From: Macrostomum lignano
Taxonomy: Eukaryota
DNA length: 64,000 nucleotides
Direction: 5' to 3'
Assembly: GCA_002269645.1 (NCBI GenBank)
Contig: NIVC01000496.1
Coordinates: 1 to 64,000, forward strand
The notes beneath the pieces are model-generated. The model saw only the letters and a list, made by a program, of their open reading frames with translations. It searched no databases and was not told where the DNA came from. Shown piece after piece: positions 27,271-64,000 of this stretch (its first letter is position 1; every line of letters starts with the position of its first letter). The translations under genes were made by a program, and so were the position numbers.

Positions 27271-32139
<4,869 letters not shown>

Positions 32140-32993
32140 GTCGTCAGAGACGTCAGAGGATGCAAGCAGCGACGATATCAGGGGAATCAGGAGTTCAGCT
32201 GCTAAATGAATTGTATGCATGATTTCTAGTTCAGTTTCTGCTCTTGTTTTGCGATTTTGATCCCTCATTGCTGGTGCAATGCCCGCAGAAGTTAAACCTT
32301 GCTGGTCTGCGCTAATCCCAGGGCTGACGTTCAGTGTGCCATTTTTATTCATCGGTCAGTCATTCTGCTTCTTGCCCTGCGCACCTTCGGCGAGCACTTG
32401 GTTATCGAGCCGTGCCGGAGACACTTGAGATTCTGTAAGCCAAATTGGCTCTGCTATTCATTGCTTTACCATTACGCTTAGCGATTATGCTAATCAGTTA
32501 TTATGAGACACTGTGATTTCCGCTAATTCCCTTTTTGATTCCCCTATTTTGCTACTGTTAATCACTGACGTTATCTTGTTGCCCTGCGCAGTTGCTTCAC
32601 TTGGCTTCGAACTGTTATTTTAGTGTACATATCCTACAGGTAGATTGTAGCTTCGTTGGTGATCGCAGTTTACGACTAGTCTGCGTCTCAACTATTTTTA
32701 GCTTTGTTCTTTGTACGCCCACCAGAAAGGTTTTATATCTGCACTTTTATATCTTATATCTTCACAGAACACTTCGTTGTGCACAAATATTCTATTCCAG
32801 CTAAGTATTTCCCTTTGATTATTTTATCATTGCAAAGGTTTAAAAAAATAGACAGAATAGCGGAGTGCCATTCCGGCAACTCCTTCAGTTCAATAACTGA
32901 TTTGAGTCCTCTTCAGTCTTGCTTTATTTTCACTTAGTTTCATTTGGGCTTCGCAGGCGGTTCAGCTTAACTGCGGTGCAGAGGCAGGCATAC

Positions 32994-35754: not shown

Positions 35755-36265
35755 AAATCTCTGACGAGTCACAACAGTTCTCGAAATTTTCGCATGCCCA
35801 TGCCCATGTGATCATATTAGCTACCGTTACCTTACGTGAAATCTCTGACGAGTCACAACAGTTCTCGAAATTTTCGCATGCCCATGCCCATATGATCATA
35901 TTAGCTACCGTTACCTTACGTGAAATCTCTGACGAGTCACAACAGTTCTCGAAATTTTCGCATGCCCATGCCCATATGATCATATTAGCTACCGTTACCT
36001 TACGTGAAATCTCTGACGAGTCACAACAGTTCTCGAAATTTTCGCATGCCCATGCCCATATGATCATATTAGCTACCGTTACCTTACGTGAAATCTCTGA
36101 CGAGTCACAACAGTTCTCGAAATTTTCGCATGCCCATGCCCATATGATCATATTAGCTACCGTTACCTTACGTGAAATCTCTGACGAGTCACAACAGTTC
36201 TCGAAATTTTCGCATGCCCATGCCCATATGATCATATTAGCTACCGTTACCGTACATGAAATCTC
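35755..36265. repeat. 84-bp x6 near-identical tandem array between the divergent JmjC and polycystin genes
   Basis: Unit AAATCTCTGACGAGTCACAACAGTTCTCGAAATTTTCGCATGCCCATGCCCATATGATCATATTAGCTACCGTTACCTTACGTG, with starts at 35755, 35839 and onward. Confidence 0.95.
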
Positions 36266-36823
36266 TTCACGCGTCGGCCAAGCAACTGCATGCAGTGCTC
36301 TGTGATGAAGTTAAAAGAATTTAGTTTTTGCAGGCGAGTGCAAAACGAAGTTTTGAGTGCAGCATGGAGGAGCTCTGAGCACTTTCACGCCCAATTTCAG
36401 ACAAAATCCTTAGCAAGATTTTATCTGCCTTGTAACTCGTAAATAATTAATTTTCTCAAACCGCCTCGCCCGACATGAGCACTGCTAGTTGCCAAAGCAG
36501 TTGCTCAAAAACAAAGGAGCTGCACTTCCTTCGTAGCAATGGGTTGCCATGGTGTTGCTGAGCTTCGTGCGAGCCGCCAGACCGTTGCCAACGCAAAGCG
36601 CAGCGAGCAATGCCGTACCCGTTTTTGACTCCATTATTCATGAAGCTGGGACAGCTCAATTTGTCGTTTGAATCATTGATGAGGCGCCCAGTGTCACCTC
36701 AGAACCATTTAATACGGCGGAACGACCCCGCATCTCTCGCGCTCAAAGTTTCTTAAAGTCTTCGCCAGCAGGCTCTGATTTGTGAGATTCATTTCACAAG
36801 CACCAGCTTCAAGGACCTCAGTG

Positions 36824-39800: not shown

Positions 39801-42800
39801 TCTGACTACTCTGAGTCGCTAGCAAATAACTCTGTAACTTGTATTGGAAACTTCTTATTATATCTGTCTGGCAGCTCAGACTCTTGTTACCTCATCTGGG
39901 ATTTCATCTCTGGCAATCACGGAAACCCTGATTTGATCAATCCGTTACTTCGCCGGCTGGCCCTGTGGGAAATATAGCTTACTATGTTAGACCAGGTGTC
40001 GGGTGCCAAAAAGCGGCCAATATTGCAGAAAGATCGACCCCAAGAGCTCCCCAAGCCAGCAGATCCGCACCCGCCCCGCAGTCGATGGCCAGTGGGGCAG
40101 CTGGTCCCCGTTCTCCGCCTGCAACGCCAGCTGCGGCCCCGGAGTCCAGACCCGAGCTCGCCTGTGCAACTCGCCAGAGCCGAAGTTCAACGGCAGGAAC
40201 TGCCAGGGCGACGGAATCGAGCTCAAGACCTGCGAGCTGACTCCATGTCCCAGTGAGTTGGGCTGGCTTCCATAGCAACCATCACCTACATAAACCTGTT
40301 GAGTCACGCTCCCGTAGCATTCACCGCAAAGTCACAGCCTCACAGCCCCATCCGTGCCCCAACCCGCTGAGTCCGTGGCGCACTCGAAGTGCTGGGGTGG
40401 GCGTTGCGTGCAGCAGCCGGAGTCGGGACGAGGCTTCAGCGCGGCCGTTTCCTCGGCAACTTGTCGCCAGGAATTGTCCGAGGTAAGGTGCCGAATTTAT
40501 CTCAGTAAATCTCTGTGTGCATGAATAGGCCTGCTTGAGCTGTGGTTGGATGAAAGCTTTCAAATTTATTCAGCGCAAACTCATTTTTACGATTTTTTAT
40601 AGCGTTAAAAAGACATATAGAATCGCTTCAACACTAAAGCTCGTATTTCACAAATCCTTTCTTCCATGAGCTGCTGGTCCTCAATGTGGACTGCAGCTCC
40701 AGTAGCTCTGGCACAAATCCTCACGCAATTCTGTCCATGAGCTGCTGGTCCTCAATGTGGACTGCAGCTTCAGTAGCTCTGGCACAAATCCTCACACAAT
40801 TCTGTCCATGATCTGCTGGCCCTCAATGTGGACTGCAGCTCCAGTAGCTCTGGCACAAATCCTCACGCAATTCTGTCCATGAGCTGCTGGCCCTCAATGT
40901 GGACTGCAGCTTCAGTAGCTCTGGCACAAATCCTCACGCAATTCTGTCCATGATCTGCTGGTCCTCAATGTGGACTGCAGCTTCAGTAGCTCTGGCACAA
41001 ATCCTCACGCAATTCTGTCCATGAGCTGCTGGTCCTCAATGTGGACTGCAGCTTCAGTAGCTCTGGCACAAATCCTCACGCAATTCTGTCCATGAGCTGC
41101 TGGCCCTCAATGTGGACTGCAGCTTCAGTAGCTCTGGCACAAATCCTCACGCAATTCTGTCCATGATCTGCTGGTCCTCAATGTGGACTGCAGCTTCAGT
41201 AGCTCTGGCACAAATCCTCACGCAATTCTGTCCATGAGCTGCTGGCCCTCAATGTGGACTGCAGCTTCAGTAGCTCTGGCACAAATCCTCACGCAATTCT
41301 GTCCATGATCTGCTGGTCCTCAATGTGGACTGCAGCTTCAGTAGCTCTGGCACAAATCCTCACGCAATTCTGTCCATGATCTGCTGGCCCTCAATGTGGA
41401 CTGCAGCTTCAGTAGCTCTGGCACAAATCCTCACGCAATTCTGTCCATGAGCTGCTGGCCCTCAATGTGGACTGCAGCTTCAGTAGCTCTGGCACAAATC
41501 CTCACGCAATTCTGTCCATGAGCTGCTGGCCCTCAATGTGGACTGCAGCTTCAGTAGCTCTGGCACAAATCCTCACGCAATTCTGTCCATTATCTGCTGG
41601 CCCTCAATGTGGACTGCAGCTTCAGTAGCTCTGGCACAAATCCTCACGCTTCACTTTAACAGTCATAAACAGAGCCGGAACGGCTGCACCAGGCTATGGC
41701 AGTCCCAACAAGAACTGCAACCCGACAGCCCGACATTCCAGACCAGCTTTACTTTATTGCTAATGGCTGGCGACTGAGATGCCCACTCCAGAGCCGTCTG
41801 CATCTCCAGATTCCCTCGCAATCGAACTCACAGGTTCACAAAGTTACACAGTTCTGTGGCATTCTGTTGGTGCATGGGTGCGTCTGAGAGCAACTCTGCG
41901 ATTTTAATTTGCATAAATTAAGCCTGGCTGCCACCTCAGATTCAAGAGACAAAATGCCATCTTGATACCAGATTGCTCTTCGCCATAAGTCAGTGGATCC
42001 TCAGCTGATGCCCATCAGTCAGAGGATCCTCAGCTGATGGCCCATCAGTCAGCGGATCCTAAGCTGATGGCCCATCAGTCAGTGGATCCTAAGCTGTAGG
42101 CCCATCAGTCAGCGGATCCTCAGCTGATGGCCCATCAGTCAGCGGATCCTCAGCTGATGGCCCATCAGTCAGCGGATCCCAGACAATAGCCAATGAGTTG
42201 TTTCCCATATCGCCCAAAGCAAATTCGATGAACATCCCGCAGTCGACGGCGGCTGGTCCAGCTGGGGCGAGTTCTCCAGCTGCTCGAGCTCGTGCGGCGA
42301 CGGCATCGAGATTCGAAACCGGCCCTGCACGAACCCGCCTCCCCAGTTCGGCGGGCGGCCTTGTCCGGGGAGCGCCAACGACTCGAGGTCATGCAATCTC
42401 AGGCCATGCCCGAGTGAGTGGCTAGGGGCTTCCCAGCAGTTTAATGGTGGTCGAATATCGGGATTTAATAAAAACTGCACGAGAGACCCGCAGAGACTCG
42501 AGATGTCCAATCCCGAACCCCTAAACCTTCCAGTTGACGGCCAATGGAGCGAGTGGTCCACCTTCTCTGGGTGCAGTCGCAGCTGTGGCTCCGGCAAGCA
42601 GTGGCGCGGCCGCCAGTGCGCCAGCCCGGTCCCGCAGTTTGGCGGTCTCGACTGCCCCGGCGGAGCCAACGAGACCCGCGAGTGCAACACCAACCCTTGT
42701 CCAGGTGGGTGCTTCGCGTGGAACCAGTTTCCTGATCGAAGACTTAAATCCAGAGAAAGTAGAGAGAATCATTCGAGTAAAAGGGTTGACCACGTGTCCA

Positions 42801-45800
42801 TTGGCAAGATAATATGACTTTTAGACTCTCTCAGCAGCCAGCCTCCCTGCATCCGACGCCATTTTCTTGAACTTCCCTGCAGTGGACGGCGGCTGGTCTG
42901 CCTGGTCCGCCTTTGCTGACTGCAGCGTCACCTGCGGCAACGGCAGCCACAGCCGCCAGCGCAGCTGCAGCAGCCCGGAGCCGCAGTTCGGAGGCCTCAA
43001 CTGTTCTGGCGAGGCGGTCGAATTCGGCAACTGTAACCCCCGACCTTGCCCGAGTGAGTGACAGCCGCTGCTCCCCCTGCCAGCCCCACCTGCCCGAGTG
43101 AGTGACAGCCGCTGCTCTCCCTGCCAGCCCCACCTGCCCGAGTGAGTGACAGCCGCTGCTCCCCCTGCCCATCCCCACCTGCCCGAGTGAGTGACAGCCG
43201 CTGCTCTCCCTGCCAGCCCCACCTGCCCGAGTGAGTGACAGCCGCTGCTCTCCCTGCCAGCCCCACCTGCCCGAGTGAGTGACAGCCGCTGCTCTCCCTG
43301 CCAGCCCCACCTGCCCGAGTGAGTGACAGCCGCTGCTCTCCCTGCCAGCCCCACCTGCCCGAGTGAGTGACAGCCGCTGCTCTCCCTGCCCAGCCCCACC
43401 TGCCCGAGTGAGTGACAGCCGCTGCTCCCCCTGCCCATCCCCACCCTGCCCGAGTGAGTGACAGCCGCTGCTCTCCCTGCCCACCCACCCTGCCCGAGTG
43501 AGTGACAGCCGCTGCTCCCCCTGCCTATCCTAGCCTTGCCCGAGTGAGACTACCGCTTGTCGGGGCTCGGGTCTGGCTGCTCACTTCTTCATCGTACAGC
43601 TCACCTCCTCACATATTTGACCTTTTAATTAGCTTTCGAATAGACCAGAATTTATTACGAGCATTGAGTGCATGGTCCGGATGCGCAGTAATTAATAAGC
43701 CGTGGCAGCACTGGACAACCCATGCACTCGCAATGGCAATTAAATCTCAGTGCTTCAAGCCAAGCCATGCCATGGAACTCTCCCGCAGTTGACGGAGCCT
43801 GGACCAGCTGGTCTGACTACTCGGCCTGCTCGCTCACCTGCGGCAGGGGTCGCCAGTGGAGCCAGCGGAGCTGCAGCGCTCCGGAGCCGCAGTTCGGCGG
43901 GAAAAACTGCCCAGGAAACTCCACCCGCGACCGAGCCTGCCTGGTCACTGAGTGCCCCGTGGACGGCCTCTGGGGATCCTGGGGCGCCTGGGAGAGCTGC
44001 AGCGTCACCTGCGGCAGCGGCACCGCCTGGAGGAGGCGGCACTGCGACTCCCCGGAGCCTCAGTTTGGCGGCAGCCGCTGCAGTGGTGCAGGCAACGAGA
44101 GCACGCCCTGCCATCCGGAGGACTGCCCCAGTGCGTGCTGCCGCATGGTCTTGCTTCCCGTTTCCCCTGTACTCAGCGCATTTGTGCTTGGGCCATTTTC
44201 GCCTATTCCCCGCCCCTGGTTTGTCAATCCAGCTGCACCTTGCAGACGCCGTCACCCGTTCACAGTCATCCCGCCGTTTCTTCCATATTATTTTTTTCAA
44301 TTCTCCGTCATCGCCCGAATTTCAGTAAACGGCGGCTGGTCGCCCTGGTCGGAATTCACCGCCTGCTCCAGGTCTTGTGGGGGCGGCCAGCGCAGCCGCA
44401 CTCGGCGGTGCGACTCCCCGCCGCCCCACGCCGGCGGCGCTGACTGCGTTGGCAGCGGAAGTGACGTCCAGGACTGCGGCACGGACCCTTGCCCAGGTCT
44501 GGCTTGTCTCCTACAAGACTATGCGATATGAGTTATGACCCCGCTGCCAACTATAGCAAGATTTTCCATCTATATTAAGCTGTTGCGTTTGTGTACGGTT
44601 GGGTTGCCAGACAGAAGAATGCCTGCAGGGCCATAGACTTCAGCAGGGGTGTAGCCAGTGAGACAAGGGTGCCGCTGATAAAACTCATGTCACCCCTTCG
44701 CAACTGATTTGGAGCCCATTCACGTCAGTTGTGGTGTCCCCTACCTGCTGATTTGGCCCCCTCACAGAAGGTGAGCCCTTGGTGCCCCTTGATGCTGGCG
44801 CCCCCTTGGTGCTAGAGCCCGTTGTTGATGGTGCTTTAGTGTCTCTGGGAGTATCTAATATTTTGACCGGGTTGAAATTGCTGTCGCCAAACCGATTGAG
44901 GTGTATCGTCCTTCCTGTCTCGTTTTTGTTTCTGGTCTGGAAAAAGCGCAAACTTGAAATCATGAGATGCTGAAGAGAATTCACAGATGCATTTTTTATA
45001 TCCGCCCTCACCCCAGTGAACGGAGGCTGGGCGCAGTGGAGCGCCTGGGGCAGCTGCTCCAGGAGCTGCGGCTCTGGCCTGGTGCAGCGCAGCCGCGGCT
45101 GCACCAACCCTGTGCCCGAATTTGGGGGCGACGACTGCGCTGGCGAGGCTGTCCAATCCACCGCCTGCGACATCCCCGTCTGCCCCGGTGAGGCCCGCCC
45201 TGCCCCAAACACCGCCTGCGACATCCCCGTCTGCCCCGGTGAGGCCCGCCCTGCCCCCAAACACCGCCTGCGACATCCCCGTCTGCCCCGGTGAGGCCCG
45301 CCCTGCCCCCAAACACCGCCTGCGACATCCCCGTCTGCCCCGGTGAGGCCCTCCCTGCTCTCTACCGGGTACTGCTCAGGATGACCCCTCAGCTCCCAGC
45401 TGACTTTTAAAGCTGATTAATCGGGTCGTCAGGCTGTTTAACGGCTCTGCAGCCCCGACCCACGAAGCCTTTCGAGAGTCAAAAAGTCACTGGAATCACA
45501 GAAATTCATGAGTTTTTTGTTCCATCTTTTTGTTAACTAGTTTGTTTCTTGATATTCTGTTTGACCTTTTCGTTCGCAAAGATTTACCTTTCTGCCAATC
45601 TGCCTTAAAAGCGAAGTGTAACTGAGCCGCCTGCCAATTCAATTCCATTCCCAATTCAATTCCAGTGAACGGAGGCTGGGGGGCATGGGGCCAGTGGGGC
45701 GACTGCAGCCTTAGCTGCGGTGGCGGCAACCAGCTGCGCTCTCGTCAGTGCGACTCGCCGAGACCGCAAAACGGCGGAGGAGCCTGCGTTGGCACCGCCA

Positions 45801-48800
45801 GTGACGGCAGGCAGTGCAACACGGACCCCTGCCCCAGTGAGTGCCCTCGTTTGTCCACACAAATTACTCATGTCTTCAGCACCACTCGACTGACTTCGGG
45901 CTTTCAACTTAGGGTTTTACCTGAAAGCAAGTCACACAGACATCCGCCCTCTCCGACTGCAGTTGACGGTGGCTGGTCAGCCTGGAGCGAGTGGTCCGGC
46001 TGCTCCACCAGCTGCGGTACCGGCAAGTCGACCAGGCAGCGCGGCTGCTCGAGCCCTGTGCCGCAGTTTGGTGGCCGGGGCTGCTCAGGCAGCGGCTCAG
46101 ACATTCGCGACTGCCAACAAGGGCCCTGTCCAGGTGCGTTTCCTTGACCACTGACGTGACTTGGTCTTTCATGAATATATCTATGTATGAAAATATTGTG
46201 GCATGGAATCGCTTCCGATTTTATGTGCTCATCAACAGTGCACGGAGGCTGGAGCGAGTGGACCGAGTTCTCGAACTGCTCCGTAACCTGCGGCAATGGA
46301 ACCCGTAGCCGGAGCCGCAGCTGCAGCAGCCCGGCCCCCCAGTACGGTGGCCGCTTTTGCCTGCCCTGCACCGCAAACCTTACCTATCCGGAGTCTGCCG
46401 ACAACGCCTCTGTCTCTTTGGCAACTGTTGTCAAGGACTACGTGAGCGTTGAGGACAATTGCTCCTACAAGGGAAACTACTATGAGGTGGACGGCGATCT
46501 CATAATTTGGGACGATGACGTTCAGTACGCGAACTGCAGCATGGAGCCCTGCATATGTGAGTCACCCCATCGTAGGTCCTTTGGTCTCCCTATAAATTAG
46601 CGATTGCACATTTACTTCGTACCTCAACCCTCTCAATACGCAGCGACCCTTGCTGACAAGGCCAACAGTTTCGTTGACGAATTCCTCAAAGGCCTGAACA
46701 ACTCAGGGACCAACAAATCCGTAAGTGCAGGAGAGCCCCTAGTTGCAATTTCGCTCAATTACTTTGCACCTATTTTGTAATTGCGGCTGCATCTTCTCTC
46801 TACGCTGGCCCGCAGGACTCGGAGTCCATGAAGGCCGCACAGGAGATGGTGAACAAGATTACAAACCTGTTGGCAGATCAGCTGAAGAACGCGGAGGTGG
46901 GTAAGCCTGTGATGATCGACGCCAAGGGCGTCTCCGTCGGCGTGTCGAAGGTGAACTCGTCCAACATGGCGGGCTCCGAGATGAAGTCCGGTGACAAGGG
47001 CGGCATCGTGCTGGGCGACGCAGAAGATACCGGGGTCGAGGGCCAGGACGCCAGTCTGAAGTTCTCAGCCCTGGACCCAAAGACCTTCTTCCCGGGCGCC
47101 GACAAGAAGGACCAGTCCGCGGCAGTTGTTTCCCTCAACCTGGCCCAGGGAACTGAAGTGAGTTGGGCTTTTCCCGGCCATCAGTGCTGAGCCAGAACCC
47201 AAAATGTCTCCTGGAAATCTGATTCATTTCATTATGGCAATTGATTTTAGGTGGTGAAGCCAAGCAACGCCTCAAAGGTGTCGCTAACGCTATCGCTGCC
47301 CAACCAGAACCAGGAGACCACCGAGAACCTGCTGCAGCCGGTGGCCATGAAGCGTGGCAAGCGGATGGTGCAGAAGTTCACGTTCGAGGCGGCGAACACT
47401 GCCATCAAGGTATGAGCAGCAGCGAGCCTCACTGCATTGTCTGAAAAATCGTGCTGTGAGACAGTGCGCAGAAAAGTTAACTGAGCTCCGATGAAGAAAT
47501 GAAGAAAAAACCGATAGCCGGGATGCATTAGCGGGACCTTTCAATGAATTTGTCGCCCCGCCCCTCAGGCGTCACTGGAGCTGCCATCTTCGGACTCCTA
47601 CCTGATGATGTTCCGAGGCGGCGTCCCGGCCAACTTCAGCAAGCAGGCGAACTTTACGGCTTGGGTGCACTCCAACGAAACCATGAAGATCGAGACGGAC
47701 GGCAGCCTGGAGGTCCGGCTGAAGTTCGACACCGCCTTGGCGGCTGCTCGGCGGCGACGGCGACGCGAGACAGCCTCGCCGGAGAAGCCGCTGACGCTGA
47801 GCGTGTTCATCCCCGGTGGCCAGATGGCGGCGGGCAGCGCCGTTTTCATGTCGCTGGAGCTCGCGGACAACGGGACGGCGGCGGCAGCCTCCGGCAGCAA
47901 CGTGACGACGGAGTCGGCCAACATGAGCCTGACGGTGGGGGTGGCGTCCATTACGCCGAGGGCGTGGAGCGACCTGCTGGGAGGCTGGGTGGACACGGAC
48001 GCAGAGGTGGCGGAGGAGTCCAGCATCGAAAAGATGGTGTTCAAGAGCAACTTCTTCGGCTCGTACTCGGGCAAGATGTTCATCGCGCCCAACACCATCA
48101 ATTTTGCCACCGTTTTCAACAACTTCGCGGGCAAGCTGGCTGAGAACTTTGTCACGCTGTTGGTGCTGTGTCTCATCATAGGCATCTACGTGGTCGTCTC
48201 CGTCTGGATGTGGCGACTGGACCGACAGGAGGCTGCCAATGTAAGTGCCAGCAGGCTGGGACTACGGCAAATTTGGATTACTTGCCACTGGGTCTCCGCA
48301 TGTATAGGCCTTATTAGGCAGTGTCGGTGTTACGTTGAACATATGTGGTACAGTCACACAGTATAAATTCCCTTAAGCTGTGCACAAAGGCTGCCTGAGC
48401 AATAATAAAGATCTAAGGATGATTTGGATTGCCAGAGTGAGCTAAGGGGACAGTGGCTAAGTGTTCTATTAACATATTTATTTGAGAGTTAACGCAAGCG
48501 CTAGTTCCTCTGAGATGGAAGAGTTTTGTTTTTACTGCAAGATTTATACTTTTTATTTCGAGGCTATGAGCTAAGTAGCCGATCTTTGTACACACTGCAT
48601 GCTTCAACAAATGGAATGATTGGCACAGCATGCGGTCTCAACCCAATCCACTCACTCAGCTGCGGTATGAGCCCCTGGAGGACAACGAGTTCGACAATGA
48701 CTACACCTTCATCATCAGCGTGTACACCGGGGACGAGTCCGGCGCCGACACCACCTCGAATGTGTTCATCAACCTTGCGGGCACCTGGGGCTCTTCTGGC

Positions 48801-51800
48801 AAGCGCCAGCTGTCTGACGGAGTGCGCCAGAACTTCTCCCGCGGCTCCGTCTGCAACTTCGCAATGACCACCAGGGCTCCTCTCGGCGAGTTGCGCGGCC
48901 TGAAGGTCTGGCACGACAACAGCGGCAAAAAGCCGGGCTGGTTCCTGGAGAAGATACTCATCGAGGACCTGCAGACCAAGAAGAAGTGAGTTTCTTCTTG
49001 TCTTTCTTCCTGTCTAGCTCGTGTTCAGCATGTCCGCCCTTTTGCCGCTTGGCTGGTTTGTTGCTTTTACATGTAACACTGTGTGGTGGCTTTCAAACTG
49101 GATCATCGTTTCAGATGTATCTGTATATGCTCATATTAGTCATGAGTCTCTCCTCGGAACACTGCGATTCCGGTGGAGGTTCATAGATTCGAGGAATGCA
49201 CAGGAACCCACTAAATGCCCACGAATTTCACTATTTCAGGAAACTTCACATCTTTAAAATGCTGGCCTATTTTCATAACTCTTAATTCTGGGCATATCAG
49301 GGTGTAAAGAAAGCAAAATTAGGGATAGAATTAGGGATAGAAGGTGGAAATTTTATTTGAATAGTACAAAGCCTAGCGATTTTTGCGCCTTCCACTAAGT
49401 TCATTGCTAAGTCTACGACAATGCGAAACATTTAGCCAATTTAGCACAAGACGTTCAATGTGCTACACAGTCTGAATCTGCAAATTCCTTGCCCAAACTC
49501 ACCTGCAGCTATGTCTTCATGTGCGATCAGTGGCTGGCTGAAAACAAGTTTGACAGCCGTACCATGCGGGTGCTGCCCGAGGTGAAGCAGGACCAGCGCT
49601 TCCAGGAGATGATGCTGCGGTACAAGGCGGGCGGGGTGGTCAACAAGCACGTGATCACGGCGCTTTTCCGCAAGACCGGCCAGTCTAACTACTCCCGGCT
49701 GCAGCGCACAGGTGTGGCCAACGCCATGTTCTTCCTCACAATGGTGTGCAATGCCATGTGGTACGGCAAGGGAGACGACCTGGATGCCGAGGCTAACTTC
49801 AGCATCGACCTCGGCCCGATTTCGGTCACCTGGTTCCAGCTGTACTCTGGCATTCTCTCCATGGCCATCACCTACCCCTGCATCTTCGCGGCGGCTGAAA
49901 TCTTCCGCCGAACAAAGAAATGGCAGCGTCGCTGGAGCGAGGACGATGTGGAGAGCAAGAAGAAGGAAATTCGGCTGCCCAAGGGCTTCCTGGTCATCGG
50001 CTGGGGCCTCCTGCTCCTGGGCGTAGGGCTGAGTTTCTTCTTCACCTTCCTTTACAGCATCGAATGGGGCAAGGAAAAGGCCAACGGCTGGCTCAAGAGC
50101 TTCTTCCTGGGAATCCTGCAGTTGGTGGTGGTCACAGATCCCATCTGCCTGCTTATCGTGTTCGTCGTGGCCAAGAAGATCTTCGGCCAGAAAGAGTCGG
50201 AGGAAAACGTCTTCGAGCTGGATGATCTCATTAATGATGATCTCAAGCAGGTGAGGAGCCGAAACGATATGTTAATTGGTGGTAGTTATAGATAATTTAG
50301 TTCCGTATCTCTATTCTTGTAGCTATCTTTGAAAAGCTACAGCAATAAATGCTATTTTGATGTATCTTCCTTCATGCGGCATTTGTCTGTCCTCGCTCCG
50401 ATCACAACAGTTGCTGCCATCTAAATGGTGCTTCCACAACTCATGCCACACCTTACACACTTTCAGGTCCTGGATGGCACTGAATACGCTCCCCCGGACC
50501 CGACTCGGATGGAGGAAATCCGAGCTGAGCGCCGAAACAACCAGAAGATGTCGCAGACATTCACGGACGTGATGTCCTATGTGGTGTACATGTTCCTCCT
50601 CGTCGCTCTGGCTTACGACTCACGTGACCAGGTCAGCTTCCGCCAGAACCAAAACTTAAAAGACCAATTCCTCACGGCCGCGCCAACCCGGTTCAATGAC
50701 TTTAAGCACGTTTTCGACTGGCTGAATGGCAGCATCGTGCCCAGACTGTACCGAACCACCGAATACAACGGCGAACCACTCACTGGAGACCTCAAAGATG
50801 CGATCGACACGTGTGACTGCATCAAGCAGGGACCATTCAGGCTGAGGCAGCTGAGGGTCAATCCACGTGAGTCTAGGCTTTCCTAGTTGAAAATATTTGG
50901 GACTTATAGGATCCACTGCTTCTGGGGTTGCCACTGGATGGATTTAGCAGGTGGCTGCAGCAACCAGCCCTATCTCCCACAGGCAAGTGCCCGGTAACGT
51001 GGCCGTTCAAGGCGTACCCCCAGAAATCGTGGATCTGCTCATCGGACTTCTCTCCCCAAGCGGCGGACCAGGCGGTTTACCGTCCGCTGTGGCTGCCCGA
51101 CAGCAACGGCTGGGTGCGGAATGCGTCATTGCAAATGCGGGCAAAGTCGCAGATCAAGCGAATGCGGCCGGATGAAATCGTTCTACAAGCCTTTTGGTAC
51201 CGTAGCGCTGACTCCATGATGAGCTTCCCGTTCGAGGGCGCCTTCACAACCTACCCGGGTGATGGCTATGCAGCCACGCTCGGGCTCAACAGTGCTGAGG
51301 CCATGTGAGTCCCAAACTCAAACGCTCACGCTGCTGAACGCTGTAGTTTTGTGAAAAGTGGCGGTGTGAAAAACTTGCAAAAAAGAAGCATATTCTCCCT
51401 GGTTTGAAGCGAAATGCATACAAACGCCTTAAAACTTTTTTCGTTTTTTTCCTATCGTGGACCCACAGGTGGATCATCAACCGGCTGCGGGCCACCAACT
51501 GGTTGGACGAGAAGACTCGAGCCATGTTCCTGGAGGGCACGGTGTACAACGCCAACACCAACCTGTTCACCACCATACAGATCCTGTTGGAGTTCCCGGC
51601 CGCAGGCGGAATTCTCACCTACAAGAACGGAGTCCGCACCTACCGCCTGTACAACTACACCGGCGGCAAAGGCATCATCCTCATGGCCATGCAGGGCCTG
51701 TTCGCCCTCATCTGCCTGTACCAGATCTATCGGGAGACGCGCAGCCTTCTCACGCTACGACTCAAGTACTTCGATGACCTGTGGAACAAGATCGAGTTCG

Positions 51801-54800
51801 TTAACATCCTGCTGTGCATCACAATCATGATCACGTACGGCATCCGCATCAAAATCACCATCGACTCCATCGAGCTGATGATGAACAATAGGGGTGAGGG
51901 GCGGTGCTCGATTTAGTGAATTTGTTGTGAATTCTATTCCTGGCTGCGTGGCGTTTAAAATTTTTGTTTTGCTAGGCGGAAAAACACGCTGTTGTCACAA
52001 TAACTCAACAGAAGTTCTAAAACAGCACAATTCCATCCCTTCAGCATGCTGTTGTTTCCCTGCGTCCCTTCAGTCCTCAGTTTAAGTTGTTGCCGTGTTT
52101 AATACACTAGTGCTTGGGAAAAAATGCTGGAGAACAACAGACAGCTGTATTAATTCCCTTTCCCACAGGAATGTACGTGGCTTTCGACAACGTTATTGAG
52201 TGGGTAGAGGCAACATGCGTGGCCATGGCTCTAAGTGTGTTCCTCACGATCTTCCGGGTGCTGAAGTTCTTGGGCTTCAACAAGCACATCGCCATCCTGC
52301 TCGCCACCGTGAAGCAGTGCGCCCGCCAGTTGTCCTCGTTCGGCGTCGCCTTCGTGCTGATCATGGCGGCCTTCCTGTCGGCTGGCACGATCCTGTTCTC
52401 GTTCACCGAGGCCAGCTTTGCCTCCGTGCTGTCCAGCTGCCGTTCGCTCTTCACCACCGCACTCGGCATTCAGGGTTACACGCAGATCTTCGTCAACAGC
52501 CAGGGCACGACTGCCAGCCTCATCTTTTTTGGCGGCTGGTCTTGCCTGGCGGTCTTTTTTCTGGTGTCAGTCTTCGTGTCCATCCTCACAGACACCTACA
52601 GCGTCGTGGTCAGCGACGGCCTCTATAGCTACGATGAGGAGTTTGTCAACCACATGTGGAGCAAGTGAGCAAAGTGGTCAAGTGCACCTACTCCCGAATG
52701 TGTTAAGTGTAGTTGGTAGGAACTGGTCTTCGAAGAGTTTTGGAGCACATGGAATGTTGTATGCTGGTGGTGTTCATGGATTAGTCCGGTCCATGTGTTA
52801 GTGTGCTATGCACTGGTCTGGCGTATTTGCGTGCCAATCTGTTGGGGCTTTAACTACATACTTGCAGCATGTGTCGCTAGGCTAACCAGCCTTGATCATT
52901 CATTTACCTCATATTGGAATCCAAAATGCACTATGCTGCAAAATCATGCTTTCGAAACTACAGATTCATGGGTACTATGGCCAGCATTACGTCAAAGAAG
53001 GACGAGCTGGGCGAGGCGCTGCAGAAGAGTGTCAGCGCTGTCAAGCGTCGAATGGGTGAGCCTAAGTTCAAGGATCAGATACATAACAATCCGTTGCTTT
53101 CACTGCTGCTAATTTCTTTTCGCAGTGACGGAGGACGACATCGAGATTCAGCTTAATGAGGACCGGCGCCAGGAGTCCGTTGGCGGGGCCGAGGAGAGCT
53201 CTGGCGGCAAAAAGGCAAAAGACAGTAAGCCTTGCTCAGTTCTTGGAGCCGGAGACTACTCGTATTTATGGATGTACTAATTAGACATAGCTCGTAAAAG
53301 TATCTCCAGCACAGCATGTTAAAAGTTCGCGTTTGCGGGTTCGCTCAAATTAGCAAGTATCCACAGAATGACACGTGCAAACATATAAAAAGTGCTCTCG
53401 AACATAAAGAGCATGTAACCCTACATCTCCCCTTCTCCCCTGGCCCGCAGTCAACCCGGGCTCAAGATGAAGCTAGCGGTGGTAAACAGGGACAAGCCGG
53501 AGACCGGAGAAAGCTACGTCTGGACGCCCAAAGAGACGGGAGATGAGGTGCTCGTTGACGCCGGTGAGCTGAGCGCCGTTGCCACAGAGGACGCGGAGCC
53601 GGGCTGGATCCCCAGGTTCAAGTCAACCGCACTGGACTTGCAGCCGCCAGGACTTGACGACAGCGGGGCGTCGGCTTTCCGCTTTGACCCGCTGGGCGAC
53701 AGCGCCAGGTCCGGCCTGCACCTTCTGTGTGTGTGTGTATTAACCTACGGCTCGGGTCCCAGCCCGCCGAGGAAGGTCGACTCCAGGAAGGTGGACGTCT
53801 CAATTGGGTTGTTCCAAAGGTCACTAGGGCAGAGCGGCGTCGGATAGACAGGGCAGTCGAAAAGATGGACCACCGTTTGGGGCTCCAGACCGCAATCAGG
53901 ACAGACCGCGGCGACGCCTGGTTTGATTCTCGACTGAAAATCTTGGAGAAGCGGGCAGAAACCGGAGCGGAGCTGCGCCAGTATGCACCGCATGCGGCGG
54001 GGGAGGCAAGTTTCGGAGCGATGGATCGCTGGCCGTTGTGTTTGAATAACACGGTTCTGTGGCAGGCTGTCCAGCATGGCCTGTACTGCCTGCGTATGCT
54101 GGGCCCGCCTGGCGCGATCCCAGGCAGCAGCGTCAAGGACGTCCGGGGCCGGAACCGGCGTCCAATCAGCATTAAAGTGTTCAGCCGTGAAGATGGAGGC
54201 TTTCATGAGTCTGCGCGGCGGCGGAAGGCCAGAAAGGTGGTGACAAGGGAGTTCAGGGCGTCTAGCGCGAAGCTTGAACTGGAGCGAAAGAAGTCGGTTG
54301 TGCTGGCGGACGGTAAGCAACTGGACTTCACTATGAAGATCCGCTTCAGAGGTAAGGGCAGTGCAGCCGGTGATGCCGCGAATCGCTGCATTCTGGACCG
54401 ATTGCAGCCGCGTCCAGGACGAGTTGGAGATGATAGGGCCCCAGACCGGAGCAGCATAGTCGAGCAGGCTTCTGCCTAACGCTTTGAAGGTGGTCAGCAA
54501 AAGTTCCTTGCAGCAGCCCCAGGAGGAGCCGGCGAGACAGCGTAGCAGGCAGTTCCTTTTCCGGGTTTTTTCCGCAAGAGTGGTAACGTGTCTAGCGAAG
54601 GAGAGCTTAGGGTCGAAAGTCACACCAAGAATTTTCGGATAGAGGGCTTGCGGTAGTAATGAGCCGTTGATGGACACGTTCAGTTGACGAGAGTACTCGC
54701 GCTGATCCGGACTGAACAGAGTGGAGGAGCACTTTGATGTAGAAATTTGGAGCTTGCGCGACTCAAGGAACGGAGCAAGGTCAGCGAGATAGCTGTTCAG

Positions 54801-56771
54801 TTGTTGTTCAATAGAATAACAGTTTGGGGATGAGGCGGCAACGGTAAGATCGTCAGCGTAACCAATTAGTTTAGTGGCCGGATTGGATGGCACAGGAGCT
54901 TTAGCCAAGTAAAAGGCAAAAAGAAGCGGGCTGATGGCGCTGCCCTGTGGAACTCCCATGCGAACCTGCCGCCACTTCGACTTAAAGTCTCGCATGACGG
55001 TCCGAGCTTGACGACCAAGAATGTAGTTGGCAAGCCAGGCCTTAACAGTGTTAGGAAGATCAGACTCGGCGAGATCAGAGAGTAATTCGTAGTGGTCAAC
55101 GCAGTCGAATGCCATCCGAAGGTCGATCGCGCTAACGCCGGTCCTGGCCGGCGGTTTTGGCAAACAAAAACCTGAGCAGATCTGCTCAACCAGTTGGCAG
55201 AGGGCGGTCACGGTGGAGTGATGCGGACGAAAGCCATGTTGCCAGGCCGGGAGCTGGAGGTGGTCAGTCAGTAGCGGAAGCAGGATCTTCTCCAGAATTT
55301 TGACGAGCGGCGAGAGAAAGGAGATAGGGCGATACGACGCACCATCGTCCTGCGGTTTACCATCCTTCAGAAGGGGACAGATTAAGGACTTCTTCCAGAC
55401 CGCCGGGATCTCATTGTAAGCGATTGAGCGATTGAAGAGGTTTCGGAGCACAGCCTTCGCCTTCGGACCAAAGTGCCTAATGACGAGCGGGCAGATTCCA
55501 TCAGGGCCGATGGCCTTGGAGGGTTTGGACCGCTTGATGGCCATTTCGATGTCGTCAGTCGAGAAGACAGGGGCGTCTTCAGCGGCACGAGCAAGGCCCT
55601 TAAGACGTCGACGAACGACGCGCATCTGCGGGTTGGAGCAGTGAAGGCGCGGCCTCGTGAACTGACAGTTGAGACGGTCCGCAGTTTCGGCACCAGAAAG
55701 GGCCTGTTTTCCGTTAAACTTTAAAATGACATTCTTATCCGCGTTAGGACGACCGGTCAGCTTTTTAAGAGTGGACCAGATTCTAGAGGACGGGGCAGGC
55801 TGGTTGCCATTCTCTAAGAGAAATTCGTTCCAGCGCACCCGTCTCTCCGCTTCCAGACTTGAGTTGATTTGTGCTTGAAGGTCCGCGATACCGGGGTCCG
55901 ACGGGTTGTTGGTGCGAAGAGCGTCGCGCGCAGATAAGAGTTGACTAATTTCCGGTGAGCAGGGATCCGGGCTCTGCTGTTTGAAACGACCCTCCGGGAT
56001 CGCAGTCTTCATGGCCGACAGGATCAGCTTACGGAAGGCAGCTTCTTGAGTATGAGCAGAACCGGTGCCGGTGAAGTTGTCCAGAGAGCTCTCGAGGGTA
56101 TTGGTGAAGAGCTCCCAGTCTGCCCTCCTAAAATTGATGAAGCATCTACGAGCCGCGGTGGTCGCCATACTGGACACACCCAACGAGATGATGATGGGCA
56201 GATGATCGCTAGAGAGTGTGTGAAGAATGTCGTAGTCGGCCTTCAGGAGTAAAGATTGATGGACAGCCGTAACGTCAGGGGTCGAGGGAGGTCCGTTGCT
56301 AGGCAGTCTGGATTGGGCTGGCGTGGATAGAAAGTCGAAAGGAGCTTGTTCGACCTGGAGGGCAAGCAGGTCCCCGCGCGTTCTGTCGTCGAAGCCTGCG
56401 GCTCTGCCACCACTGCAGGTGAGTTGCTTTGGTGTGCAAAAAGATAGCGCTCAGAGTCAAATACAGCTTCGAGCGCGTCCATGAGTGAATCCAATAAGGA
56501 TCACTAAGGAAAAAGCTCACAATAAGGATGATTAAGGATGATCTGGATGATTAAAATACGTGTACTTCAGCATATTCGTACTGCATTTATCCCAAAATTG
56601 CACTGTAGCTAAAAGTTCAGTAACTGGTCAAACTTGAATTTGCTCATGCGATCTCTGTCTCGACAGGCTGATGAAAAAAAAGCGAAAAAGAAATCCAAGA
56701 AGGACAAGCGGCAGCCTGGCTCAGGCTCTGGTACTGATGAGACGCCGAAGCAGCTAGACTCGGAGATTTAA
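36824..56771 (+). CDS. PKD1-like: Polycystin-1-like (PKD1L/PKDREJ class) 11-TM receptor-channel with TSP1-repeat ectodomain, ~2450 aa, 30 exons
   Basis: Signal peptide exon 36824-36902 ([22 protein letters not shown]). PLAT-like exons 37719-37869, 38203-38299, 38581-38662. TSP1 exons (WSxWSxCSxSCGxG..R.R.C) at 39000-39176, 39611-39781, 40082-40252, 42243-42413, 42534-42704, 42883-43053, 43789-44130 (x2), 44326-44496, 45017-45187, 45666-45836, 45963-46133, 46239-46556. GAIN/TM1 at 46644-46720, 46816-47157, 47251-47409, 47569-48240. PLAT at 48660-48985. TM/channel exons 49509-50250, 50467-50866, 50983-51304, 51469-51893, 52169-52664. Tail exons 52964-53055, 53126-53224, 53451-53728 plus 56387-56418, and 56667-56771. 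One phase mismatch at 53224/53451. Confidence 0.9.
37030..37399. repeat. 38-bp tandem array (~10 copies), polycystin intron 1
   Basis: Unit CTCTCGAACTAAGTGCCAGAGTCTTGAACTAGCTCTAA. Confidence 0.95.
37853..38160 (+). repeat. ~61-64-bp x5 repeat copying the exon 2 end plus donor site
   Basis: Unit ATGTTCACACCGGGAAA|GTGAG...CATTCCCAAGAGCAC. Confidence 0.9.
38680..38935. repeat. ~55-bp x5 intronic tandem repeat
   Basis: Unit CTCCATGCTATGACATTCCCATGACCCATGTGAGCACCGACACTGTGCT... Confidence 0.9.
39205..39390. repeat. 20-bp x~9 intronic tandem repeat
   Basis: Unit GGATAGCTGGACATGCAACT. Confidence 0.9.
40663..41650. repeat. 71-bp x~14 intronic tandem array
   Basis: Unit TCCATGA(G/T)CTGCTGG(T/C)CCTCAATGTGGACTGCAGCTTCAGTAGCTCTGGCACAAATCCTCACGCAATTCTG. 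Confidence 0.95.
41985..42180. repeat. 30-bp x~6 intronic tandem repeat
   Basis: Unit CCCATCAGTCAGCGGATCCTCAGCTGATGG. Confidence 0.9.
43045..43550 (+). repeat. ~43-44-bp x11 repeat copying a TSP1 exon end plus donor site
   Basis: Unit CCTGCCCGA|GTGAGTGACAGCCGCTGCTCTCCCTGCCAGCCCCA. Confidence 0.95.
45160..45348 (+). repeat. 51-52-bp x4 repeat copying a TSP1 exon end plus donor site
   Basis: Unit ACCGCCTGCGACATCCCCGTCTGCCCCG|GTGAGGCCCGCCCTGCCCC(C)AAAC. Confidence 0.95.
53729..56380 (-). mobile_element. 5'-truncated LINE (APE remnant, RT, C-terminal Cys/His motif, no RNase H; tentatively I-group/Ingi-Vingi-like) with uninterrupted ORF
   Basis: The minus frame is open from 56380 to stop 53745. 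It contains RGDLLA..., [31 protein letters not shown] and [15 protein letters not shown]. (AC)n 3' tail. TSD TTCTGT at 53723-53728 and 56381-56386. Confidence 0.92.
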
Positions 56772-58091: not shown

Positions 58092-59670
<1,579 letters not shown>

Positions 59671-60285: not shown

Positions 60286-63200
60286 TGTCATAAATATATA
60301 TATGCGCAATATCTTGACAAGACAAGATTCGAGACAAGATCCTGACATTTTTTCTTGTCTCAAGAAGTCTTAATGTGGCAAAGTGCCACTGGACTGATCT
60401 GAGGTTGCTTGGGGGTGTCGGGTTGCATGGGCACATTGATTTGTATATACACCTCATTGATTGCTCATCCTCGCGTGTACATATATCGGGTACTAATATA
60501 CGTTGTGCTTATTAAATATATATGTGCGTGCACTAACAAGCAGTCGCTCAAGTTTTCTTGAGAAGTTCTAACTTACTTAACCAGTGGAGTCCATGTGAGT
60601 TATTACAGTGGCAATGAGGAAATCTTAATGGCTTTTAAATTTGATGTTTTTGACATTGCTGTTGAATCCTGGCCTGAGTATCAGGAATGCCTTGAGCAAC
60701 ATTTCCTAGCCAATGACAACATTTCAACCCAAAGCTGTTAGAAATTGTGCAGCTGAGAGCTTCATGTTCTACAACTGCATTCGTCAGTTGGATGAGTCTG
60801 TGTCTGTGTACATAGCAGAGCTTAGGAAGCTGTCCAAGCACTCCAACTTTGGCACCATGCTGGACAACATGCTGTATGATACCCTTGTCTATGGCATAAA
60901 TGACCAGCAGATTCAGCACTAGCTTCTATCTTAGGCATCTCTGATGCTGCAGTCTACCACAGACATTGCACTCACTAACAAGTTGGCCGCGGGCTTCTGT
61001 AAGGTTCTCTGCGCGACTGGAGAGACAAATAGATAGCCGGATGATGCTGTGCAGCAGGTGCCTGTCATCTTGACACCTTCCTAGCCAATGTTCATTTCTA
61101 AACAGGCGCTGTTTCAACTGCAACAAGACTAGGCACGCAAGCAACTGCATCAGCCGCATCAGCAGCAGCATCAGCAATCTCACCAGGTCGAGGAAGGAAG
61201 CGATCAGGAGTTGCCAGAACTGCCTAATCCCTCTATCACATTGGCAATGCAAAGAAGCCAAGTAAAGTCCTGCACTACACAACTCGTCTGCTGATTGACG
61301 GGAAGGACTACAAGATAGAAATCAACACTAGCATCTCCATGTCATTGGTCTCCGAGCAAACATATTGCCAGAAGCTTTTGAGCGAACCTCAGCTGGAATC
61401 AACCAACATCCATCTCAACACATATTCAGGCCAAGCTGTCGAGATTCTAGGCAGACTGATTGTCAATGTCAAAGTAGCGGCACAAGACAGTCACTTGCAG
61501 CTGCCACTGCTAGTTGTGATGGGCAGCGGACCAAATCTCCTTAGCAGGGACTGGCTGCACAGCCTGCGCCTGGACTGGCAGTCAGTTCAATGACTGTCCT
61601 CAATGGCTTCCGACATCGAACAAGTGCAGCGCGTGTTCCCCGAGGTATTCAGGGAACTAGGGACATTCAACGGGGCCCCTCTATCCATTGCCATCAAGGA
61701 AGGAGTGTGTCCTTGGTTTTTCAAGGCCTGCACCATGCCTTTTGCATTGAAAGATAAGGTGGAGCAGCAACTATGCAAGGAGATCAGCCAGAGGATTCTG
61801 CAACTGGTAAAGTCATCCAACTAGGCATCGCCGATTGTCCCTGTGATAAAGTCTGACAGCAGGCTCTAGGTGTGCGCCAACTTCAAGCAGACTATGAACG
61901 CCACTGTAGAACTGGACAACTACCTGCTGCCAAATATTGACGAGCTCTTTTCACAACTATCAGGTAGGAAAAAGTTCTCGAAGATCGATCTCAGCCAGGC
62001 ATTTCAACAGCTTCTGTTGGACGAGGCTGCACAAAAGTTGTGCACTATCACTATCTCACTGGGGCTACTATGCTATACACAACTGCTGTTTGGGGTTTCA
62101 ATGACTCCTAGTATGTTCCAACGTGTCATGGACAGTCTATTCATTGGCATCAAGCACTGCGCAGCCTTCATGGACAACATTATTGTTACTGGTCAAGATG
62201 AAGCAAGTCATTTGAGGAACCTGCGAAAAGTCCTGACTGTGTTTAAGGACACGGGACTCACTTGTGACACAAAGAAGTGTACCTTTATGCAAAACTCAGT
62301 GGTCTGTCTACCTTGGCCATCTAATTGATGCTAAAGGCTTGCATCTTCTGCAAGATAAGGTGGAAGCAATCATCTCGGCACCACAGCTACAGAACTGTAT
62401 AGCTTTCTTGAACTAGTCAATTATTATAGCAAATTCTTTCCGCAGCTGTCTGACACTCTGGGGCTGTTGCACCTGCTGCTCAACAAGGACACTAAGTGGC
62501 ACTGGGACCAACCATAGGAGGAGGCGTTTGCCAAGTTTAAGTGTCTGCTGTCTGACCCTGGGGTCCTAGTGCACTACAACGCATCTCGCGAACTCTTCTT
62601 AGAATGTGATGCCTCCAAGTATGGCCTGGGTGCCGTCATCTTCTACCGCATTGACAACTTAAACAGACCTATTGCTTATGCTTCTAGAATGTTGAGCGCA
62701 GCCAAGTGCAACTACTGTTAGCTGGAGAAGGAGGCCCTAGCCCTGGTATTTGGGGTGAAGAAATTTCATCACTACTTGCTTGGCAGAGAGTTTGGGCTTC
62801 TCACCAACCACAGGCCTCTCCTAGGGCTGCTTGGCCAGGACAAGCTGATCCCAGCTCTGGTGTCTGGAAGAGTGCAACGCTGGGCGCTCCTGCTGTTGGC
62901 CTACTGCTACCACCTGGTTCACCAGAAGGGCTCTTCCCTGCTGAGAGCCAATGCTTTGAGCCGCCTACCGTTGCCCGAGTGCCTTGCTGCTATGCCCGTC
63001 ACTCCAGAGGTGGCTCTGGTAATAGACAACCTGGACTTCTCTCTTGTCTCCTCAGCTGACGTGCGTACATGGACTCAATGGGATCCGCAGCTGTCGCAGG
63101 TTGTCCACTTCTGCCTATCTGGACGCTGGCCGGAGCCAGTCCTGTCTGAGTTGTTGCCCTTCAGCATCAGGGCTCATGAACTGTTAGTGTATAATGGCTG

Positions 63201-63575
63201 TCTCCTTTGGGGTAGCTGCATAGTGATCCCTCTTACCAGCTGGCACCAGCTGCTGCAATGTCTCTATCAAGGCCTCCCAGACGCTAAGTGTATGAAGGCA
63301 CTTGCCAGGAGCAGCATCTAGTGGCCCAACATGGACAAGGAAATTGAGGGGTCAGCCACTGGCTGCATGGAGTGCCAGCAACTATATCTAGATCTGCCTG
63401 TGGTGCTGCTTCTGTCGTGGCCAGCCTCAGCCACACATTGGCAATGTGTCCATATGAACTTTGTCGGCCCTATAAACAACTGCATGCTATTTGTCATCAT
63501 GGATGCATTTTCAAAGTGGCTAGATATCCATGTCATGAATTCAACAACTTTGGCTGCTACTATTGACAAGTTGAT
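60286..63575 (+). mobile_element. Decayed Ty3/Gypsy LTR retrotransposon: putative 5' LTR 60286-60607, PBS-like, gag-PR-RT-RH, truncated integrase
   Basis: TG...CA LTR-like segment followed by GTGGCAATGAGG. Gag ESVSVYIAELRKL; RT FSKIDLSQAF..FQRVMD..FMDNI; RH ECDASKYGLGAV..EKEALALVFGVKKFHHYL; IN W..VH.NFVGP..DAFSKW. Many stops and frameshifts; no 3' LTR in the window. Confidence 0.9.
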
Positions 63576-64000
63576 ATATATATATATTATAAGTTACTTA
63601 GGCTCCACTTATAAGCTTAAGTTGATAGGCTTTTTATGCTAAAAACTGAAAACTTCTTATTTTATCATTATATATATACAAATAGAATGTTTCAAACTAT
63701 GCTTATGGCTAGCCTATAGACGGTATTTGATAACCAAGCATAAAAAATAACCACTGCCTTGGCTTTACACATTATTTTTTAATTTAGTTTTCTACAAAGC
63801 AACAACCTTTTAAAGTTTAAAATTCTAGTTTTATATTGATTGACCAATTAATTTGATACATTGATAATGATATGATTTCCTTATAGAAATTTAGATTGCC
63901 TAGAAATTTAAAATAAATGTGTTAGGCCTATAAAGATACTCAATTTAGTAGTATAAGCCTATTTTAACCATATTTTGATAAGTTTATGCAGCTACATTTT

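Follow-up and report, generated by a model that had tools for sequence, protein, structure and literature searches.

A 5′-truncated LINE inserted antisense near the 3′ end of a polycystin-1-like gene of Macrostomum lignano

The window analysed here is a stretch of 64,000 nucleotides from the flatworm Macrostomum lignano (assembly GCA_002269645.1, contig NIVC01000496.1, positions 1 to 64,000 of the forward strand). Near the 3′ end of a polycystin-1-like gene on its plus strand lies a 2,652-bp copy of a retrotransposon lacking long terminal repeats (non-LTR), or long interspersed nuclear element (LINE), which occupies positions 53729-56380, runs antisense to the host gene and has a perfect TTCTGT repeat on both sides. 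We consider it probable that an APE-type LINE with a single open reading frame (ORF) was inserted by target-primed reverse transcription (TPRT), in antisense orientation, in a C-terminal coding exon of this gene, which resembles the planarian PKD1L-2.

A genuine retrotransposition event is supported by the edges of the element, which combine a perfect target-site duplication (TSD), a microsatellite tail like that of a relative, and LINE homology up to 2 nt from the TSD. The features at the two ends are as follows.

53723 to 53728: left TSD copy, TTCTGT, whose closing TGT keeps register with the (GT)n run of the element
53729 to 53747, minus strand: 3′ end of the LINE, comprising the stop codon TAG (53745-47), GTTAAT and (CA)5; a very short (16 nt) 3′ untranslated region (UTR) with a microsatellite tail
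56381 to 56386: right TSD copy, TTCTGT

The 5′ boundary of the element is fixed by protein homology, which extends from the stop codon of the LINE to 2 nt from the right TTCTGT, and the 3′ boundary is fixed by the tail. Both TTCTGT copies are identical, and neither can be extended by one base. In random placements of a 2,652-bp segment within the window, the chance of exactly abutting matching 6-mers is 0.04%, and it is 3.1% when a slack of ±3 and ±8 nt is allowed at the two ends. An earlier sequence-only reading of this DNA had described both the duplication and its microhomology with the tail, and these descriptions agree with what is seen at 53723-28 and 56381-86. When the element is removed together with one TSD copy, the rejoined flanks predict a contiguous empty site, ...CACCTTCTGTCGTCGAAG..., of which 92 nt read gctttgacc...caccTTCTGTcgtcgaagcc.... 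An exact search of JGI metagenome contigs with the left flank gave 0 matches, and the window contains no other copy of the LINE.

The element carries the following features.

53748 to 56380, minus strand: LINE ORF, 5′-truncated, with 879 codons free of stops counted from 56384, about one codon being TSD
53853 to 53903, minus strand: C-terminal CCHC knuckle (17 residues), its C, C, H and C invariant in relatives
54624 to 55340, minus strand: reverse transcriptase (RT) domain, Pfam RVT_1 (E = 1.3e-29), with YADD at 54849-54860
56181 to 56380, minus strand: remnant of the APE endonuclease, its last ~68 residues, identified by alignment with relatives, the closing 10-residue motif being at 56181-56210

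Apart from RVT_1, a Pfam scan of the copy detected nothing, neither Exo_endo_phos nor PF00075 (RNase H), and its last 122 nt showed no RNA structure beyond shuffled controls. Alignment with five relatives places the beginning of the copy at the conserved D..RG of the endonuclease, at about residue 330 of ~1,180 aa. Missing are the N-terminal two thirds of the APE domain, a PHD-like finger and a 2A-like motif, along with the 5′ UTR and promoter, as the element opens within the APE domain, right behind the TSD. Judged by this alignment, the copy represents ~70% of a ~3.7-4 kb element and is 5′-truncated and dead on arrival; it is not autonomous, because it has lost the beginning of its ORF and the greater part of the endonuclease. 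The sequence-only reading was therefore right that the ORF is free of stops, and wrong to call the LINE intact.

The host gene around the insertion is composed of the following parts.

38888 to 52664, plus strand: upstream body, with TSP1 repeats, PLAT, a region of 11 transmembrane (TM) segments, Polycystin_dom and PKD_channel
52664, plus strand: end of exon A, the channel exon, with donor AA/GTGAGC, phase 2
52964 to 53055, plus strand: exon B (30 residues), in phase with exon A; codon-usage log-likelihood ratio (LLR) +9.3 bits
53126 to 53224, plus strand: exon C (33 residues), donor A/GTAAGC, phase 1; LLR +20.2 bits
53451 to 53728, plus strand: left part of exon D, preceded by the acceptor ctggcccgcag, codons at 53452+3k, containing an unused-looking GTGAGC at 53564
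56387 to 56418, plus strand: right part of exon D (11 codons), with donor CAG/GTGAGT at 56419
56667 to 56771, plus strand: last coding exon E (34 aa), acceptor cag/GCT, starting ADEKK and ending PKQLDSEI; stop TAA at 56769-71

That the LINE sits in coding sequence is likely, and the argument rests on exon D. In the frame 53452+3k, the left part of this exon contains 0 stops and has a GC content at third codon positions (GC3) of 0.78, compared with 0.82-0.88 in the Pfam-supported exons of the host gene; the other two frames contain 4 and 5 stops. Codon usage was scored by a log-likelihood for which 1,615 codons of this host gene with homology support served as the training set. Exon D reaches +52.8 bits over 92 codons (0.57 per codon), which per codon equals the control exon A, and the left part scores as coding in every 12-codon window, while the neighbouring intron is strongly negative. 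The coding signal is so strong that something must translate exon D. Once the flanks are rejoined, the same frame continues through 11 codons to CAG/GTGAGT and then through the 34 codons of exon E, so that excision restores an in-frame exon followed by a last exon ending in DSEI, as had been claimed earlier. The previously given donor at 56419 and the DSEI end hold on joining the flanks; the bounds of exon E are corrected here to a start at 56667 and a stop at 56769-71. At the 3′ end of the gene, 4 of 4 donors are GTRAGY and all acceptors are cag, matching the splice motifs published for M. lignano, a GT[G/A]AG donor and a CAG acceptor (PMC8629364). AATAAA signals lie 3′ of exon E at 57352 and 57548.

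The identity of the host gene is well defined upstream of the insertion. Its Pfam matches include PLAT (3e-14), Polycystin_dom (3e-16) and PKD_channel (1e-17), with TSP1 repeats at 38.9-46.4 kb, and a profile-free search of 1.84 billion representatives yielded 7,594 homologues. The best of these is PKD1L-2 of Schmidtea mediterranea (AKN21725.1), 45% identical over 927 aa; another is a polycystin-1-like protein 2 of Ptychodera flava. PKD1L-2 maps collinearly onto the window from 38.9 kb to 52,662, and the two proteins share N-terminal TSP1 repeats, PLAT, the 11-TM region and a channel-like domain, whereas the cytoplasmic tail after the channel domain cannot be aligned between them. Between 46.7 and 48.4 kb there is no Pfam match at all, GPS and REJ included (E <= 0.1), yet this region aligns to PKD1L-2 residues 411-756. 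The gene previously named a polycystin gene can thus be specified, from its domains and alignments, as a polycystin-1-like gene with TSP1 repeats, and it is likely an orthologue of planarian pkd1L-2. Planarian pkd1L-2 is a marker of ciliated mechanosensory neurons, and both rheosensation and the sensing of vibration require it (PMC11448475).

The TSP1 part of the host gene also contains two tandem arrays, at 43039-43548 (44 bp x11) and 45159-45358 (52 bp x3.9), whose units hold the end of a TSP1 exon and a GTGAG donor; units of the first array further hold an acceptor-like CCCTGCCAG. Exon/intron boundaries have thus been duplicated in tandem in this region, which could provide alternative splice sites.

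Several signs bear on the age of the insertion. In random sequence of matching composition, an open frame of 879 codons has P ~4e-13. Of the substitutions possible in the LINE ORF, about 3.3% are nonsense, and with indels ignored the ORF would stay open with a chance of 0.42 after 1% neutral divergence, 0.08 after 3% and 0.01 after 5%. The insertion looks young because the ORF, the CpGs, the tail and the identical TSDs are undecayed, in agreement with what the sequence-only reading had proposed from the stop-free ORF and the CpGs. M. lignano is neopolyploid, with three nearly identical subgenomes, S, L1 and L2, that are ~1.4-1.6% apart (PMC10733133), and the age signs cannot place the insertion before or after the split of these subgenomes. 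In the element the ratio of observed to expected (o/e) CpG is 1.00, whereas a broken gypsy-like remnant has 0.35 and intergenic DNA 0.25-0.43; CpG retention can serve as no more than soft evidence of age, since its value as a clock hinges on cytosine methylation in the species.

Besides this caveat on age, the following observations weigh against a recent insertion into the coding region of the polycystin gene. Exon C ends in phase 1, and the acceptor of exon D needs phase 2 for its coding frame. When exons A, B, C and D are joined through the strongest sites, translation ends at the TGA at 53469-71 (..KKAKDINPGSR*), 257 nt before the LINE. Exon E is the sole open frame in its place and its coding statistics are weak, because it is lysine-rich. 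Finally, a protein search with the channel exon and the restored tail, aimed at an allele or orthologue whose tail is uninterrupted, gave no match at E <= 0.001; the tail exons have no homologue in planarian PKD1L-2 or among the other proteins searched, and the tail belongs to no Pfam family.

The phase conflict arises where exon C meets exon D. Exons B and C resemble the host in codon usage and are bounded by strong splice sites; A, B and C follow one another in phase, and coding potential falls exactly at the donor of exon C. Joining A directly to D, which skips B and C (191 nt), is in frame. We rejected a micro-exon between C and D that would mend the phase, as this interval has no GTRAG donor and no open frame for it. 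No phase-2 GTRAG donor is present, and the one phase-1 acceptor is a weak tag at 53475/6. Possible causes of the conflict are a 1-nt homopolymer error, a real frameshift, alternative 3′ ends, or a separate ORF from the ATG at 53467. The assembly is PacBio-based (PMC5730564). Candidate homopolymer runs are A5 and A4 at the end of exon C and CCCGGG at the start of exon D. The interrupted frame may accordingly belong to the main polycystin isoform, to an isoform that skips B and C, or to a separate ORF. Of the earlier description of the LINE as lying in the penultimate coding exon of the polycystin gene, the coding signature and the D to E join are borne out; the phase through A, B, C and D is not, and A to D is in phase.

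The conflict leaves room for other explanations. It is possible, if doubtful, that this copy of the gene, as one of the S, L1 or L2 homeologues, is a duplicate in decay that tolerates two lesions, a real 1-nt frameshift and the LINE. Two independent defects within 500 bp of the 3′ end would fit such decay, as would a neopolyploid genome with three subgenomes and a redundant assembly (PMC10733133, PMC5730564). On the other hand, the upstream 14 kb are collinear with PKD1L-2 and the matched exons undisrupted, subgenomes just ~1.5% apart leave little time for decay, and the frameshift may be an assembly error.

The phase conflict could also mean that the insertion is real and lies in the 3′ UTR of the main polycystin mRNA, the frame through A, B, C and D ending at the TGA at 53469-71 so that the coding region is untouched. 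We regard this as unlikely. The scores of exons B (+9.3 bits) and C (+20.2 bits) are host-like, both exons have GTRAGC donors and are in phase with A and with each other, the donor of exon C is the only GTRAG in reach, and the acceptor of exon D is the only strong one. Set against this is the strong and uniform coding signal of exon D in a different frame (+52.8 bits, 92 codons); the frame that a 3′ UTR would require has 5 stops and a negative score. In the empty allele, moreover, translation would stop in the penultimate exon, 289 nt short of the last junction; this would invite nonsense-mediated decay (NMD), which would be odd for a main isoform, and a 1-nt homopolymer error in the PacBio-based assembly, for which candidates exist, would remove the conflict altogether.

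An improbable alternative is that exons D and E form a separate small gene (ATG 53467, 133 aa), possibly trans-spliced to the spliced leader (SL) at 53451 as the second gene of an operon, and that it is this gene that the LINE disrupts. The phase conflict would then vanish, with the polycystin ending in or just after exon C; the ATG lies 16 nt past the acceptor, the D-E product does not resemble the tail of planarian PKD1L-2, and in M. lignano 30% of genes undergo trans-splicing and 15% belong to operons, in which intergenic distances are ~100 bp (PMC8629364). Yet exon C has a strong donor, exactly where coding potential falls, that needs a cis acceptor, the acceptor CCGCAG departs from the [T/C]TNCAG reported for trans-splicing, the spliced leader of M. 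lignano has a terminal ATG that would be out of frame with exon D (PMC8629364), and no homologue of the 133-aa protein was found. That there was no insertion event at all, the structure being an assembly chimera or a chance repeat, is highly improbable: assemblies of this species are difficult, repeat-rich and redundant (PMC5730564) and the TSD has just 6 bp, but the repeats abut the element exactly, one behind the microsatellite tail and the second at 2 nt from where the protein homology ends, excision restores a continuous coding frame to a canonical donor, and TSDs are not created by chimeric joins.

If the LINE lies in the coding exon D of the polycystin gene, as we favour, its consequence for the product can be read from the filled allele, and the position of the new stop is as follows.

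53845 to 53847, plus strand: premature stop TAG in the host frame reading into the antisense LINE, 2.57 kb upstream of the D-E junction

After ...SGLHLL, the frame adds 39 residues of antisense LINE, and the native 45-residue C-terminus is replaced. This accords with the earlier description of a frame that enters the antisense LINE tail, stops at 53847 and loses about 45 residues. The native tail consists of 11 exon D residues followed by ADEKK...DSEI and is lysine-rich; its final -DSEI (56757-56771, plus strand) resembles a class I PDZ ligand in form.

We also considered whether splicing could rescue the native tail and judged this unlikely, because the strong donors lie after the stop and those of the (GT)n run are weak. 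The run offers just weak GTGTGT donors, not the GTRAG of the species, and the GTRAG sites in the antisense LINE, at 54313, 54352, 54844, 55416 and 55955, all follow the premature stop. Within exon D, the GTGAGC at 53564 (phase 1) is a perfect donor-like site, the same as the donors after exons A and B, and its phase does not suit exon E; elsewhere in the supported exons of the host gene GTRAG is rare. This site may be an alternative donor, and its use may increase when the exon, with the LINE in it, approaches 3 kb. An ATTAAA at 54171 could end the transcript early. A stop far upstream of the last splice junction is the classical configuration for NMD, and with the stop 2.57 kb before that junction the mRNA is a likely NMD target if the normal donor 56419 is still used. 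The effect of the insertion depends on splicing and on the other gene copies of the polyploid genome.

The proposed mechanism is an ordinary TPRT event. The plus strand would have been nicked after ...CACCTTCTGT, and the 3′ TGT of the nicked strand could have paired with the ACA that ends the (CA)n tail of the LINE RNA. Reverse transcription would have stopped or detached ~70% along the RNA, and a second-strand nick 6 bp away would have given rise to the TTCTGT duplication. Translation of exon D would henceforth enter the antisense LINE and exchange the DSEI tail for foreign residues. With three near-identical subgenomes, the loss of this disrupted copy is probably buffered by the other gene copies.

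De novo 5′-truncated LINE-1 insertions in coding exons are known, for example in exon 14 of human factor VIII. The present case shares with the factor VIII insertions TPRT, 5′ truncation resulting in a dead copy, a short TSD, and interruption of an exon with a premature stop. It differs in that the LINE in the window is of another lineage, with a single ORF, a microsatellite instead of a poly(A) tail and a 16-nt 3′ UTR, in that the insert is antisense, and in that the host is a neopolyploid flatworm in which a phenotype may be masked.

The relatives of the LINE allow its lost portion to be described. Among 5.8 billion proteins searched there were 301 relatives, of which the best are 1,000-1,230 aa long, are 38-43% identical over 99% of the query, and carry Exo_endo_phos (PF03372), Exo_endo_phos_2 (PF14529) and RVT_1. 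Full-length relatives of 1,060-1,230 aa (P0001, P0005, P0007, P0009 and P0013) carry a 2A-like ..G(V/I)E(x)NPGP at their start; next come a Cys/His finger (a weak or faint Pfam PHD match), APE and RT. Their ORFs occur one per 3-4-kb contig, most of them in ENA or Logan contigs. In the one contig that was read, the relative L001 (86-3460) ends with a stop, ~35 nt and (CAA)5. PF00075 was not found in the 50 best relatives, and the next-best group of database matches (~29% identity) does carry RNase H, a domain present in the I and Ingi clades; this, like the lack of RNase H in the family itself, fits the Vingi group, which is related to Ingi.

A single ORF, the absence of RNase H and a microsatellite tail fit both a CR1/Crack/Rex1-type element (Jockey group) and an Ingi/Vingi-type element (I group), and do not discriminate between them. 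The combination of 2A-like, PHD, APE and RT in a single ORF has been reported from amphioxus and sea urchin, in some elements of the CR1, Crack and Rex1 types (PMC3708506), and named elements with 2A followed by PHD are CR1-1/17/26_BF, Crack-17_BF and STR-24/25/34/35_SP (Odon et al. 2013, PMC3708506). Our full-length relatives resemble these 2A-bearing CR1, Crack and STR elements in the order 2A-like, finger, APE and RT, in having one ORF and no RNase H, and in the microsatellite tail. In contrast to them, the copy in the window has lost its whole N-terminal part, and its nearest database proteins are just 38-43% identical. For the other group, Ingi and L1Tc have been reported with 2A, and Vingi as a single-ORF element without RNase H (cited in PMC3708506, PMC5786205). 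The single ORF, the 2A-like N-terminus of the relatives and the Vingi-like absence of RNase H are shared with the Ingi/Vingi group; unlike the relatives of the window copy, however, Vingi elements have no 2A-like sequence according to Odon et al. (PMC3708506).

The remainder of the window contains an older element and further genes. A Ty3/gypsy-like pol remnant at 60700-63640 on the plus strand is split over several ORFs and, with a CpG o/e of 0.35, is old, unlike the LINE. Its parts are as follows.

61870 to 62325, plus strand: RVT_1
62722 to 63318, plus strand: RT_RNaseH
63322 to 63639, plus strand: integrase-like ORF

Upstream of the host gene, an AMPK alpha catalytic subunit gene occupies 27271-32140 on the plus strand, and its kinase-domain exons (27.3-28.2 kb) are 100% identical to a UniRef protein of M. 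lignano. Its paralogue BOX15_Mlig019461g2 (80% aa identity), on scaffold NIVC01001792.1, is older and non-syntenic, and lies without LINE or polycystin sequence. Minus-strand GC-rich ORFs at 3777-4622 and 6399-7142 show similarity to SAXO1-2 (E = 8e-7) and the domain of a protein kinase (E = 4e-24), and the AMPK gene is probably preceded by one or two more genes. Introns and spacers are filled with long minisatellite arrays, whose units measure 23-197 bp and recur up to ~27 times, and several of them give long spurious ORFs; their abundance agrees with the high tandem-repeat content reported for the M. lignano genome, more than half of which is repeats (PMC10733133, PMC5730564).

14351 to 15646: minisatellite array
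22035 to 22925: minisatellite array
28282 to 29437: minisatellite array
29921 to 30873: minisatellite array
33329 to 33986: minisatellite array
35755 to 36266: minisatellite array
37029 to 37400: minisatellite array
40659 to 41649: minisatellite array
58432 to 58946: minisatellite array

A dead-on-arrival LINE copy in an exon is the product of an ordinary and well-known mutational mechanism, and its interest is local rather than general. The insertion flags a LINE family that was recently active in M. lignano, and it marks a gene copy, likely the pkd1L-2 orthologue, whose annotated 3′ end will be wrong or truncated. Its presence or absence also makes a simple marker with which to distinguish the S, L1 and L2 subgenomes or the DV1 and NL10 lines, and it draws attention to the sequence just upstream, where the assembly may be wrong by 1 nt or the gene may have an alternative 3′ end. 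A more tentative possibility is that the insertion is specific to one subgenome (S, L1 or L2) or to one laboratory line. Were this the case, a single-ORF LINE family of the 2A/PHD type would be currently active, and the affected copy would either swap its PDZ-ligand-like DSEI tail for a LINE-antisense peptide or be silenced by NMD. The insertion would then represent a datable first step of homeologue loss or of C-terminal remodelling in a neopolyploid animal.

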